Origin: Bispira polyomma
Taxonomy: Eukaryota
DNA length: 64,000 nucleotides
Direction: 5' to 3'
Assembly: GCA_965649765.1 (NCBI GenBank)
Contig: OZ287750.1
Location: 100,440,001-100,504,000 of the forward strand
Of the stretch, positions 13,425 through 63,969 are shown piece by piece; position 1 is the first letter of the stretch, and the number at the start of each line of letters is the position of its first letter. The notes beneath the pieces were generated by a model. The model worked only from the letters and a program-made list of their open reading frames with translations. It made no database searches and was not told the DNA's origin. A program made the position numbers and the translations under genes.

Positions 13425-16400
13425 CTAGCGAGGACAAACTAAAAGAGAGAAAAAATAAATTAATTAATACATACACACAAAAATGACTTAAATACTTTAT
13501 AAATATTATGTTGTTCTTTAAATAGATCAGCTTTGTAAATGCATATTGTACAGCTGTTTTTAATTTAAGCAATACCACTAACCTTTCCCTGGTTTCTGAC
13601 ATAAAAGAATAATGTCCCAAATGTGATTGATGTCTTCTACAGTTAATACATTACTTGCTTTTCCACAGGCCATAATGAGTAGTTGTTTTGAGTCCACTTC
13701 TAAACCAAGTCCAATAACCAAAACCCTGTTAAAATTCAATTGGTTTTGTGGATTATATAAAATTAATCTTCAGTGAGGTCATTTTATGGATCATTTCAGT
13801 AGGACTACTCAGTGTCTTGGATTCTGACTGGTGTATCAGACTATATATCTACATAAACTATGAAATGAGAAGAACACATATAATCTATACTATAATTTAC
13901 TTATTCTATCATTTTCATCCCAAGCTATATTTGGAAATCTTTCAGTTCTTTACAATTACTTTTATTCATACATTCACGTAGCCGTGAAATATGACCTTTT
14001 GACGTGCGCCAATGAAAATGTATAGGAATTGTAGTGTAGAATTTAACCCATTTCTTTGCACAAAATATCACCAAAAATTAAACATATTATAAAATATCAA
14101 TCTAAAGCAATGTTAAAACATAAAATTCAAAGGCTGTTGATCTTCTTTCGACATATAATCTCTTTTATATACACAACCCTGGTTGTTTTACCACTATTTT
14201 AATTGTTTTACCATAAAAACTTACACCACTGCTAATTTATTTTGAGTTTTGTTATCTCAATAACTGTAAATCTGAGAATGCAACTGTAATTTTGCTATAC
14301 ATTATGATAAAAGGCCTTGTCGTAAATAAATGTTGTATACAGGTGACCTTTCTACACAGAGTCCGAGTTTTAGTAATTCATACTTACTTGCTACATCGAC
14401 ACAAGCGGTTGGAGGATGATATCAGTTTGCCCATATTTTCCATAGTCCTACTTGCTGTTATTATTATTGTCAAGGTAGGTGCCCTTTTTCTAGAAAAAAA
14501 TTGGTGCAAGATACAGTATCTTAAGTGAATTTTAGAGCTTAACTAGAATACCATGTGAAGCAGGGACTATGTACATCTATTGTGGTGAGCCACAGTAGTG
14601 AGAACAGGCATGATTATCTATGTAACCACTTATGAAAGGTGACATGCGAAGCTTCCAAAAGGAAAACACATCAGTTCAGCTGTCATTTTTGTACAGCATA
14701 CTGCTAAAGACAGTGGCCTCAAACATTACCCCAATCTGATATGTATTTAGTACACCACAGTTTTATAATAGAAAACAGATCTCCTGCCGCACTACCAGCC
14801 ATTCACATAGTGGCACCACAAAGAGGGTGACAAAAATTAGTATCACATACGCTGTCAGGTTGAATTATGACAAAAATACATTTATTAAAATGGCATACCA
14901 AAATTACAAATAACACTTCATTTTAAAAGCAACTGCTAAAAGATGCCATGTTAAGTTTTCAGTAAAATAAATATATTACTATAAAATTAAATAACATATA
15001 TTTTAAAATGTATTAGCATACTAATATCAATAGAATAGTAATATATATGTATATAAAAGTTTTATACTGAATTTGTATTTACCTGTTTGGTGGACTTCTA
15101 CAAAAAATTTTTTTAGCCTTTTTAAGAACTTTGGATAAACTACTAATTTTAGTTCCTATATATGGAACTGCCGCTATGCTACTGCCAAGATTAACATTAT
15201 TGGCTGTGCTTAGAGTTTGTAAATTCCAGTTAGACACTGCATTGTTGCCGAAGGTCATCACAGCCACCTAAAGTAATGTAAGCTTTATTAAAATGATATA
15301 TACTTTGTGTATGTGAGTGTAATGAATTAACATACCAGTGTACAGTTTGGGCAAACACAAGTAGTAATTGACTTATTTTGATTTTTTTTGAGTGAAAATT
15401 TAAGGAGTAAAAACATTAACTTAAGGCAGAACTTAACTGTCCACATACATTTAAGTAAAATGTTAAGAATATCGGTAACAAGCATTACATGTATAATGTG
15501 AACTAACTACATTTACAAACTTATGGAATGTTACTTCGAATTTGAGTGAAGTCAACAGAAAAGGTGAATTCAACCTAAAGTGAGACTTAGTAGGGCTCGT
15601 ACGTGATCAACCATAACTGGAAGGTGTTTTCACATGATTAAACCACCAAAGAGAGGATGTGTGCATTAAGATGATACTACAGATTAATCCTAGTGGAAGT
15701 TATAGATGACGAAAATAACAGAATGAGACCCACTGGGATTATACCTTATGAAAATAACAAGCAGAGGATTATACATAAATATGAAATAAACAGCCCATTG
15801 TAAAACAATAGGGAAATTCAGATTTTGGAGAGTAAAAGGGGCTTATTAAAATCAGATATTTAGGTAATAGATTGTAGAAGTTGTACTCATATTCCATGTA
15901 CAAATTAAAACATTGGTAGGTTACAGAAAGTTTAGTTATATAGCCGAAACGAAAATATTAGCACTTTCAACCCAGTACCTATATTGTCATATTCATAATA
16001 ATTAAATATTACTAAATTATTACCTGCACATTACACTTTTTAATCTTGAGGTCAGCAACCAAGTCCGACATAAACTGCTTTAGAACGATAAAGTCTATCA
16101 TGGTCATGGTGGAACTTGCATCAGAGATCAATAGGAGGTCTAATGCACCACCCAGAACTATTGTAGAAATACACAATCATAATACATTCACAAAATATTA
16201 TTGTTATATATTAGGCTGGGTCATGTACTTACTTTAACCTGTAACACATGTCACTTAAATACATAAATGCTTATATGGAGGTCATTATATGAGTAGGACT
16301 TTGATATTACTACTAAAAATCATTGTTAAAGTGTAGAAATAAATGTCAAAGCGTTAATATGTACACCGACTACTACTTTTAAATTTAAAAACGGAATGTG

Positions 16401-61200: not shown

Positions 61201-63969
61201 GGCACCTTTATGTTTGGCCAAAATTGGTCACTTGGGATACTTTGGCACTCTGTCAATGACCTTGAATAAGGAGATTGTGTGCATACTTATACAGGGCATA
61301 TGATTTCGTTAAACGTATCACCCATGAAGAGATTTAACCTTATACAGCTGGGAAACAGACACAGTTAAAAGCCGGATTATTTTTTTAAAAATGCCAGTGA
61401 CGGCCATGTTGTATTTCAAAATGAGGCTAAAATTACTCTCAAGCAGGCTTTTGTAATAAAAAACATTTCCAGTTAATTTTAGGAGCCTAGATATAAAAGT
61501 TTTCCCAGGAGAGCGGTAACAGTAAAATCTCTACACATACTGACACGGTGGCGGTCGAGTAACGAAGTGTAATCCATAGTAAAACTGTGGTGGATACAAT
61601 TAATGATTAGCAAAGTATTACCTGCACATGACACCTACTGATATTGAGTCCATCAATCAAGTTTCCTATGAAATCTTTTTCAACAAGAAATTCTTCCTCG
61701 GTCACTTTAGAACTTGCATCAATGATAAATAAGATGTCCAATGCATCGCCCAGAACTGTTGGGTAATATACAAGCCACAATGTATTTATGAAATATTATC
61801 ATTATTTAACAATATACTCTAATACCAGTTCAAATGACATCAGCTTAACTTAACTAACCAGAGTTCTTGAAGATCATCTGTCCCAAATAAAGCACTCAAT
61901 CAGACAATACCAATAGTGGGCTTTAGAAGATTAAAATATCTATAATGTGCACTGGTAAAAGCATATTGATAAAAATGCTCAATTTGATACTTATAGCGCA
62001 GCATTCCAGAAGGGTCCAGTGATCACGGCCACTTGTGATAATAATGAGCCTAATAAATCAGTGAGCTTCAATACCATGGCCGAGACAGGGCCCTATAGAA
62101 ATTACTACAGTGGAAGAAATGATCAAAATGGCTGCCGTAGTTAGAGATACAGGTTTTCCTAATTACAGGCAGACAAGGATTAACAATACCAATCACTACT
62201 CTTCTAGTCAATACATTGACTGAGAAAACACATACTTAAGTAGGGAACAGGATAAGGAAGCCATGATTGGTCCAGTATCAGCAGTTGACTCATTATATTA
62301 CTACTGTTATCCTGTGCTAACAAGGCTCAATGACAGTAATGAGCATTTAATATTTAAGACCTATCTTATCTCTAGGGAATTTTATTAAATGATAACGTTA
62401 ATAGAACAAAATTTGATGTATTGAATTTTGTGTTTTTCCTGCAATTGACGATATTACATGTTGCTTGGCAACACTACAGAAACATACTGTTTAAATTTGA
62501 TGTTGCAGGCGCATATTGAAACTTTAATGCCCTCAAAATAGGCGTCATTTCGATGTATAGCTAGTTCATTGATCCGACTTGGTTCATGTTAGCGCAGCAT
62601 TCCAGAAGGGCTCTGATGCAGGTATGTCACATATGCATAGAGAAAAATTCTACTTTTTTGGTTATATTTCTGATTATGTATGTGTCTGTACTAACGATAA
62701 AACTAAACAGAGGCTTGATACATTTTACAAGATTTAGGTCTCCATACTAAAGCAGACAAGCTTATCCTTTGTGTGTCAAGTCGGCGGGTTCCTTATTAAC
62801 ATACATCAAAGTTAGTTAAAGGTGAATACAAAGGGAGAAAGTTCAAGGTGACCACAACAATGCATAATGATCTGAATTGGTTCCAATATATTTTGCCACT
62901 TTTCACTTTTGCTTCATCCATTCCTTTGTCTATCGAGGTTGAGCTTAGGGTTTTAAAATTTTATTTTTTAATTTTAAGCTTTCCTTTTATCTGTAACATT
63001 TTATCTATAAAATGCCCAAACCTATTATTTCACTGAGTTATCAATTTACATTTGAACTTCATCTGCCCTTTAAATTATTCAAATTTCACCGCACATCCTG
63101 GGACTGACATATTTTAGAGGTTCAATACCAACAGGCCAGGTTTAGCAGTGTCCATGTACAAAGCCTACTTTTATCCTAAAATTCAAAGCATTGCTGGAAG
63201 TTATGGGTTAGTGTTAGATAAATAATCTGCAGTGCGCATTGCGATTTCAGAGAACAACCCTGAAGAGGATACATATATACAGATAATGCCTTTTCCAAAA
63301 GAGGATATTTTTATAAAAAAATAGGTGAAAATTGCCACACCTACAATATGTACATCCAGAAAATGAGACCTAAACTCCAAAGAAAATATGCGAAAGTCCT
63401 AAGACCTGACAACAACCAACCTCAAAAGCTGGATAATAAATAATTTAGTAATAAATTGATGTTGTATTATTAGATTCCTGTCTCTAAATACATACCTTAT
63501 TAGTAAATGAACTTGTAAGCATGTATACTTCAAATAACTATCAGGTATTCATGTTACATGTGCCATACACCGGTATACCCTTATTACTAAATAAACTTTT
63601 GGACATGTATTGCTCAAATAACTACCACATATATATAGTACACAGGACTTATATCACTGGAAACCAATTGTAACCAATAAAACTTTCCCGTCGACATATC
63701 TGGTGATACCAGTTCTACCTGTTTAGCTTTGTTTAGTACAAAGTTTATAACAAATTATACTTAAATTTTAGCGCCTGTCTGCTACTATGTAGATTAGGTG
63801 CCTGGAGGAGTGTCATTAGATTGGATTAAATTACATTTCTAAGAGCAACTGTTTCACAGAGGAAGATATGGTTATTACTGTTATTTGTTTGGGGAAAACA
63901 TAATATAAACAACACAAACTTACCGCTAGGAGTGCAAATTAGAGTTAAAAATACTATCATAGATTCCAT
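58255..63969 (-). CDS. Secreted single von Willebrand A-domain protein, paralog B (205 aa, 6 coding exons)
   Basis: Exons 63969-63924, 61755-61622, 60132-59948, 59347-59249, 58537-58395 and 58265-58255 are all GT-AG and in phase. Protein: MESMIVFLTLICTPSVLG-DALDILFIIDASSKVTEEEFLVEKDFIGNLIDGLNISRCHVQVAVMTFG...GNRLGAPNLTIIMTGS...KVLVIGVGHEVDPNQLEILACG...CQTPVKVCP*. Confidence 0.87.
60416..61600 (-). mobile_element. Second Helentron-type element with a ~146-bp array, in intron 2 of vWA gene B
   Basis: Same termini (ctagaccta.cgcatc.gag.ac.gatgc...tgtatccacc and ggtggatacaat) and the same repeat unit as 9536-10727, but more diverged. It ends ~20 nt from the exon 2 donor. Confidence 0.78.

Follow-up and report, generated by a model that had tools for sequence, protein, structure and literature searches.

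The best match in the databases and among solved structures to exons 2 and 3 of the genes described here is the N-terminal von Willebrand factor A (vWA) region of collagen VI alpha3 (PDB 9han chain C; the N5 domain, PMC3919171). In collagen VI, vWA domains are repeated eight to ten times in a chain of more than 3000 amino acids (aa) that also carries a collagen triple helix. In most of these domains the metal ion-dependent adhesion site, or MIDAS, is not conserved, and the A3 domain of von Willebrand factor (vWF) binds ligands through sites other than the MIDAS (PMC3919171). Expanded families of collagen-type vWA proteins without triple helices are known in molluscs (PMC5597905); proximal thread matrix protein 1 (PTMP1, PDB 4cn8) of mussel byssus and the molluscan collagen-like vWA proteins are lophotrochozoan secreted matrix proteins that belong to expanded families and are built solely of vWA domains of the collagen type. 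Here, we describe two genes, A and B, in a 64,000-nucleotide (nt) window (G000:C3:100440001-100504000) of the AT-rich, transposon-rich 1.04-Gb genome of the animal Bispira polyomma. To judge from their sequences, A and B appear to form a new local branch of this known invertebrate kind of collagen-type vWA protein, one that has neither stalks nor a MIDAS. We consider it likely that both are functional members of a lineage-specific tandem family with birth-and-death turnover, encoding secreted proteins of ~205 aa in which a signal peptide precedes a single vWA domain of the collagen type.

A six-frame motif search located DASST at ~16.1 kb and DASSK at ~61.7 kb of the window, both on the minus strand. 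Reading of the splice sites around these motifs gave a gene A of six exons (21287-13425, 207 aa) and a gene B of six exons (63969-58255, 205 aa), both on that strand (Table 1). Every one of the ten introns has GT-AG ends, and A and B have the same exon phases, as expected from the original prediction of two intact paralogs. The predicted outer limits are also exact, as position 13425 is the last base of the gene A stop codon and position 63969 is the A of the gene B ATG. An in-frame stop lies 13-67 nt upstream of each ATG (13 nt in A, 34 nt in B), and AATAAA signals that align between A and B are found ~100 nt past each stop codon, suggesting that these are independent transcription units. The neighborhoods of A and B constitute a segmental duplication with ~70% nucleotide identity over exons, introns, and flanks (12433-16210 compared to 51430-61808). 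The second segment includes a 5.7-kb insertion (~52356-58039) that splits the 3' flank of gene B.

Each gene encodes one vWA domain. When Pfam VWA was searched exon by exon, the first domain exon matched positions 1-37 and the last domain exon positions 134-172 of the 174 in the model, with exon 2 of gene B above the cut-off, so the four middle exons bracket one complete domain. A profile built in-script from three canonical, Pfam-VWA-positive relatives (P0010, P0031, and P0023) matched the spliced products of A, B, and three paralogs over residues ~19-205 with E values of 1e-21 to 1e-27, compared to 0 of 100 shuffled controls. Against PDB, exon 2 of gene B matched collagen VI alpha3 (E 1.2e-16) and vWF A1 (E ~1e-3), and a profile of exon 3 gave weak vWA matches only (Toxoplasma MIC2, E 0.018). 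A Photorhabdus protein that also matched the exon-3 profile in the PDB search was set aside as a chance repeat match. Hydrophobic strands alternate with amphipathic helices in the alignment, consistent with a Rossmann-like vWA fold.

Outside the domain there is a hydrophobic N-terminal exon on one side and two or three residues followed by the stop codon on the other. No Gly-X-Y triple-helical region is found in the 205-207 aa products, and the predicted layout of a signal-like exon, a single vWA domain, and nothing else thus describes both genes. Residues 3-12 have a mean hydropathy of 2.7-3.0 and are followed by small residues (V-L-G) ahead of the domain, whereas later 19-residue stretches never exceed 1.6 in A or 1.0 in B. 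In the alignment, this N-terminus falls where the canonical relatives have their signal peptides. The A and B proteins are probably secreted.

The MIDAS is degenerate at all three of its motifs in both genes, and the predicted variants of the first and third motifs were found where expected. In the first motif, A and B retain the Asp and the first Ser of DxSxS, and the fifth residue is Thr in A (DASST) and Lys in B (DASSK). At the position of the MIDAS Thr in the second motif, alignment to relatives with DSSGS, FTNT, and TDG places Ser in A and Ile in B. The Asp of beta4 is replaced by Ala in A (TAS) and by Gly in B (TGS). The complete DxSxS...T...D metal site is thus absent from A and B. More broadly, the canonical relatives in the alignment have DSSGS, FTNT, and TDG, in contrast to the subfamily, which has DASS followed by T, K, or S, no Thr in the second motif, and T(A/G/T)S in beta4. 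No cluster member examined has the beta4 Asp, so its loss is old. What did not hold is that this erosion sets the family apart. A degenerate MIDAS is unexceptional and is common in the collagen-type vWA branch, because most collagen VI vWA domains lack a conserved site and, in the alignment used here, those of collagen VI alpha3 have TAS or TSG in beta4. In addition, DASSS, formally a DxSxS motif, is still read in the paralog P1 and the pseudogene P6.

The cysteines give a similarly mixed result. If the Cys at residue 12 belongs to the signal peptide, mature A has seven Cys and mature B has five, and five are common to both, including a C-terminal C-x6-CP; these counts agree with the original prediction, which took the odd totals as a hint of intermolecular disulfides. 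That hint is now weak. Four Cys form a core present in all five intact genes (one preceding beta2, one where alpha4 ends, one where alpha5 ends, and that of the terminal Cys-Pro), and the odd totals of A and B result from one or three extra Cys beyond this core. In P1-P3 the conserved core is four, an even number, which weakens the case for an odd count as a design of the family. In the standard vWA topology the four core Cys should all sit on the bottom face of the fold, where two disulfides are plausible. A and B lack the N-terminal Cys by which canonical vWA domains are closed. The proteins also differ in their N-glycosylation sequons, with NIS, NYT, and NLT in B and zero in A, as had been noted before.

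Among the relatives found in databases, those nearest to A and B are the vWA domains of collagen VI alpha3 and small vWA proteins of invertebrates that have cysteine-run stalks and a complete MIDAS. A search of 1.84 billion representative sequences with the exon-3 profile gave 30 matches. These were collagen VI alpha3 chains of vertebrates (8-9 stretches matched in each), a protein of Dreissena labeled "collagen alpha-3(VI)-like", the small single-vWA proteins P0010 and P0023, and numerous exon-sized pieces of ENA assemblies. A word search with an alignment of the canonical 205-aa relative P0023 together with the exon-2 and exon-3 pieces added P0031 and otherwise found only P0023 itself. In P0010 and P0031, a signal peptide is followed by a poly-Cys run, a Cys ahead of beta1, a vWA domain with a complete MIDAS, and a second poly-Cys run. 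Like A and B, these cysteine-stalked proteins are small and have one vWA domain, and they are secreted, as is predicted for A and B. The profile built from them matches A and B along the whole mature length. Directly after alpha6, P0031 and P0023 have the Cys-Pro also seen in A and B, and P0010 has Cys-Glu. The exon-3 boundaries of canonical stalked-type copies in this genome agree with those of A and B. However, the stalked relatives keep the full MIDAS (DSSGS, FTNT, TDG) and the poly-Cys runs flanking the domain, and A and B have neither: no poly-Cys run occurs on either side, the mature protein starts 2-3 residues before beta1, and it ends in CP or CPR. The Cys ahead of beta1 is likewise absent from A and B, the Thr and Asp of the MIDAS are gone, and three new conserved Cys are present.

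Like A and B, collagen VI alpha3 has vWA sequences of the collagen branch that mostly lack the conserved MIDAS and read TAS or TSG in beta4. Unlike the repeated domains of that long chain, A and B have a single domain in ~205 aa, carry a signal peptide of their own, and lack both Gly-X-Y and a C-terminal extension. Against PDB, P0031 matched collagen VI alpha3 with E 2.4e-53 and PTMP1, its second-best solved match, with E 1.9e-26; A and B themselves were compared at the exon level. PTMP1 has two vWA domains and A and B have one, and shell-matrix vWA proteins, unlike A and B, often carry chitin-binding or other domains. The vWF A1 domain belongs to a very large multimeric protein with three A domains and is closed by a disulfide between its N and C termini, the N-terminal Cys of which is absent in A and B. 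The first motif of vWF A1 is DGSSR, and its ligand binding is metal-free. A gene in a separate ENA assembly has the same exon layout as A and B and degenerate motifs (ESSNS, and ITS in beta4), so the MIDAS-less branch predates the local duplications in this genome.

The tandem family is larger than was originally seen. Exon 3 of gene A was used to find copies, and neighboring units were modeled from flanking DNA. Five further exon-3 copies were found on the same chromosome and strand (P1, P2, P3, P6, and P7), giving a same-strand array of at least seven units on C3, of which five are intact and one is a frameshifted pseudogene, spaced 15-45 kb apart. P1-P3 encode products of 201-205 aa with a signal exon that is conserved among the three and unlike that of A and B. 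A micro-exon ending in CP is present in A, B, P1, P2, P3, and P6, and every intact unit closes with a micro-exon that carries Cys-Pro near the stop codon (Cys-Pro-Arg in A). An exon-3 profile search of the genome found 33 copies, ~18 of which belong to a subfamily with the motif NWNLQ: seven on C3, ten at C10:2.70-3.02 Mb, and one each on C7 and C14. The chromosome-10 cluster, which like the single copies was read from 3-kb loci, includes two copies with stop codons. More distant exon-3 copies on C12, C13, and C11 keep canonical motifs such as DSSGS and FTNT.

Comparison of A and B reveals open reading frames combined with rapid change of the encoded protein. Identity is 51% for the proteins and 70% for the coding nucleotides. 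At the nucleotide level, exon 1 is 83% identical, exons 2-5 are 64-71% identical, introns 3 and 4 are 75-77% identical, and the 3' flank is 78% identical, such that exons are less alike than non-coding sequence (Fisher p 7e-4). The ratio of nonsynonymous to synonymous substitution rates (dN/dS) is 0.80 for full-length A and B, 0.89 for the mature part, and 1.04-1.33 among P1-P3. The corresponding ratio of nonsynonymous to synonymous differences per site (pN/pS) is only 0-0.3 for the signal exon. The reading frames are clearly protected. In a neutral simulation at ~30% divergence, 0.015% of copies kept an open frame (no stops, P ~1.5e-4). At the rate of the surrounding non-coding DNA ~9.8 indels are expected in exons 2-5, compared to two gap events seen, both in exon 4, which leave a net in-frame difference of 3 nt (no-frameshift P ~1.5e-3). 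The combination of a conserved signal exon, a mature domain changing at about the synonymous rate, and open frames suggests that the protein surface is either being diversified or weakly constrained. Overall, a conserved signal, fold core, and set of Cys with fast-changing surfaces fits weak constraint or diversifying selection on a secreted binder.

Several considerations weigh against our interpretation of A and B as functional genes for secreted proteins that have lost metal binding. First, the loss of metal binding is read from the motifs, in which the Asp and one Ser are kept and the fifth residue of A is Thr. Second, dN/dS does not differ significantly from 1 in any exon, and neutral drift of recently redundant copies is possible for individual members. 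Third, no full-length protein resembling A or B was present among candidates of 113-359 aa in a collection of 5.8 billion sequences, and the gene models have no independent annotation.

The alternative that survives best is that the array is a diversifying repertoire (immune, gamete, or toxin-like and directed at prey) in which positive selection, rather than weak constraint, acts on the former MIDAS face. Such families show the same pairing of a conserved signal exon and a rapidly changing mature part. The present family also undergoes tandem birth-and-death turnover, and pN/pS reaches 1.8-2.4 for single exons in some pairs. The lower identity of exons compared to introns 3 and 4 points in the same direction. 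However, none of the exon-level tests of pN versus pS is significant, with no exon departing significantly from 1. Moreover, the proportion of synonymous differences between A and B (pS 0.34) also exceeds the intron mismatch (0.24), suggesting that the gap-optimized intron alignments probably overstate intron identity. The most variable exon also shifts, from exon 3 between A and B to exons 2 and 5 among P1-P3, rather than marking a single hot surface. We regard positive selection of this kind as unlikely. The same low probability applies to the broader proposal that the array would be an arms-race repertoire of soluble, metal-independent vWA binders directed at pathogens, at gametes, or, through secretions, at other organisms. 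If true, this would give vWA domains that stand alone a function not yet described for them.

The rival with the greatest power to alter this view is read-through splicing. The units would then be parts of a single long gene or of a small number of such genes, and splicing would join exon 5 of one unit to exon 2 of the next, downstream unit on the minus strand to give multi-vWA "beads-on-a-string" chains like collagen VI alpha3, with the small forms being one isoform or not made at all. Such splicing would be compatible with the frame: exon 5, like exon 1, ends in phase 1, and exon 2, like exon 6, starts with TT, so that an exon 5-exon 2 junction would be in frame and give Val, as at the actual junctions. 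The common strand and the 15-45 kb spacing of the units are also as expected of a long gene, and the nearest relatives include the collagen VI alpha3 arrays with their 8-9 vWA stretches. Yet every unit has its own ATG and signal exon with an in-frame stop just 5', and each retains its own micro-exon with CP and the stop. A and B also share aligned AATAAA signals ~100 nt past the stop. A signal exon under purifying selection would serve no purpose in an internal module, and retroelements fill the spacers between units. We therefore consider a long gene quite improbable.

Least probable is that A and B are unexpressed, decaying duplicates (young pseudogenes) with frames open by luck: dN/dS is near 1, exons are conserved no better than introns, databases yielded no annotated protein, and true pseudogenes or stop-bearing copies exist both in the array (P6) and on chromosome 10, but the simulated chance of staying open at 30% divergence and the deficit of indels in exons 2-5 argue against it, the splice sites of all ten introns of A and B are intact, the signal exon, the four core Cys, and the cores of the beta-strands are conserved in five paralogs, and P6 shows how quickly a frame is broken once constraint is gone.

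Table 1. Positions of exons, signals, orphan exons, and paralogous units. Coordinates are those of the window unless preceded by C3.
Feature	Coordinates	Strand	Description
Gene A exon 1	21242-21287	-	ATG and 15-codon hydrophobic signal-peptide exon; ends in phase 1; donor G/GTAAGT
Gene A exon 2	16024-16157	-	End of signal peptide, beta1 with DASST, alpha1; Pfam VWA positions 1-37, E 0.025
Gene A exon 3	15083-15267	-	beta2-beta3-alpha2-alpha3; family motif NWNLQ; MIDAS Thr position lost
Gene A exon 4	14388-14489	-	beta4 (TAS instead of TDG) and alpha4
Gene A exon 5	13583-13725	-	beta5-alpha5-beta6-alpha6; gene B counterpart matches Pfam VWA 134-172
Gene A exon 6	13425-13438	-	Micro-exon; completes Val, then Cys-Pro-Arg, stop TAG (13427-13425)
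Gene A AATAAA	13321-13326	-	Poly(A)-type signal, 99 nt past stop; aligns with that of gene B
Gene B exon 1	63924-63969	-	ATG and signal-peptide exon; donor G/GTAAGT
Gene B exon 2	61622-61755	-	beta1 with DASSK, alpha1; Pfam VWA E 1.8e-5, 25.5 bits (cut-off 23.8)
Gene B exon 3	59948-60132	-	NWNLQ motif; MIDAS Thr position lost
Gene B exon 4	59249-59347	-	beta4, TGS instead of TDG
Gene B exon 5	58395-58537	-	C-terminal third of vWA domain; Pfam VWA positions 134-172, E 0.0028
Gene B exon 6	58255-58265	-	Micro-exon; completes Val, then Cys-Pro, stop TAA
Gene B AATAAA	58131-58136	-	119 nt past stop; aligned with that of gene A; upstream of 5.7-kb insertion
Orphan third signal-peptide exon	30394-30439	-	ATG intact, 15 codons, donor G/GTAAGT; ~9 kb 5' of gene A exon 1
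Sister orphan exon	C3:100509803-100509848	-	ATG intact, 15 codons, GTAAGT donor; ~6 kb 5' of gene B exon 1
Paralog P1	~C3:100363.5-100371.0 kb	-	Intact, six exons
Paralog P2	~C3:100402.2-100409.0 kb	-	Intact, six exons
Paralog P3	~C3:100417.0-100424.6 kb	-	Intact, six exons
P6	~C3:100517.3-100520.2 kb	-	Pseudogene; exon 2 has a 1-nt insertion, exon 3 a 5-nt deletion
P7	~C3:100541.8-100546.0 kb	-	Seen in part only

Two of the paralogs differ at splice sites. In P1, exon 1 (C3:100370942) has a GC donor, G/GCAAGT, compared to G/GTAAGT in P2 and P3, and the intron is probably GC-AG. In P2 (C3:100402361-100402940), the acceptor AG of exon 5 is mutated to AA. Use of a GT 2 nt upstream in exon 4 and a new AG 1 nt downstream would bring back the reading frame with the loss of one codon, and the change may be a compensated splice-site shift.

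Upstream of A and B are further copies of the first exon. Both orphan copies comprise the promoter and the signal-peptide exon, and no remnant of exons 2-5 is found between the orphan at 30394-30439 and gene A. The orphans are closer to each other than to exon 1 of A or B, suggesting that the duplicated unit probably already had two first exons. On their sequence they could be either alternative first exons or relics of a lost unit. A block ~550-700 nt 5' of the A and B starts (21821-22028 on the minus strand, compared to C3:100504381-100504542) is 87% identical, well above the 64-77% of exons and introns; it may represent a conserved regulatory element, a piece of a shared repeat, or a tract of gene conversion. 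A ~170-nt element (16368-16581, 21354-21517, 30514-30640) occurs as two tandem copies 5' of exon 1 in both A and B, and also in intron 1 of gene A just 5' of exon 2 and beside the orphan exon.

No other host genes were seen between A and B. Retroelement and transposon open reading frames occupy 18000-20400, 25500-28600, 33500-46500, and 49200-50700, in the spacers and in the 5-kb intron 1 of gene A, with RVT_1 at 27094-27648 and 49684-50661 and RVT_3 at 33553-33969. On the plus strand, 1839-6536 encodes a 1565-aa retroelement product with gag (SCAN-like, zinc knuckle), integrase, reverse transcriptase, and RNase H. Its integrase precedes the reverse transcriptase despite domains of the Ty3/gypsy type, and the RNase H match is truncated.

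We propose that the family arose from invertebrate single-vWA proteins with a complete MIDAS and cysteine-run stalks. This branch would have dropped both stalks, so that its proteins now stop two or three residues past the terminal Cys of the domain, and would have lost the MIDAS Thr and Asp. By analogy with vWF A1 and A3 and most collagen VI vWA domains, the products are most likely soluble extracellular proteins that bind other proteins independently of metal. They are probably stabilized by the four conserved Cys, which would lie near the bottom of the fold, and their binding surface may be undergoing diversification or may be weakly constrained. These genes add an unannotated, lineage-specific branch of ~18 genes to the invertebrate collagen-type vWA proteins. 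They would provide an example of a stalked, metal-binding matrix protein stripped to a bare, MIDAS-less, fast-evolving domain. If expressed in immunity, reproduction, or secretion, the family could be a useful model for metal-independent recognition by vWA domains; otherwise, it would represent an ordinary expansion of matrix proteins.

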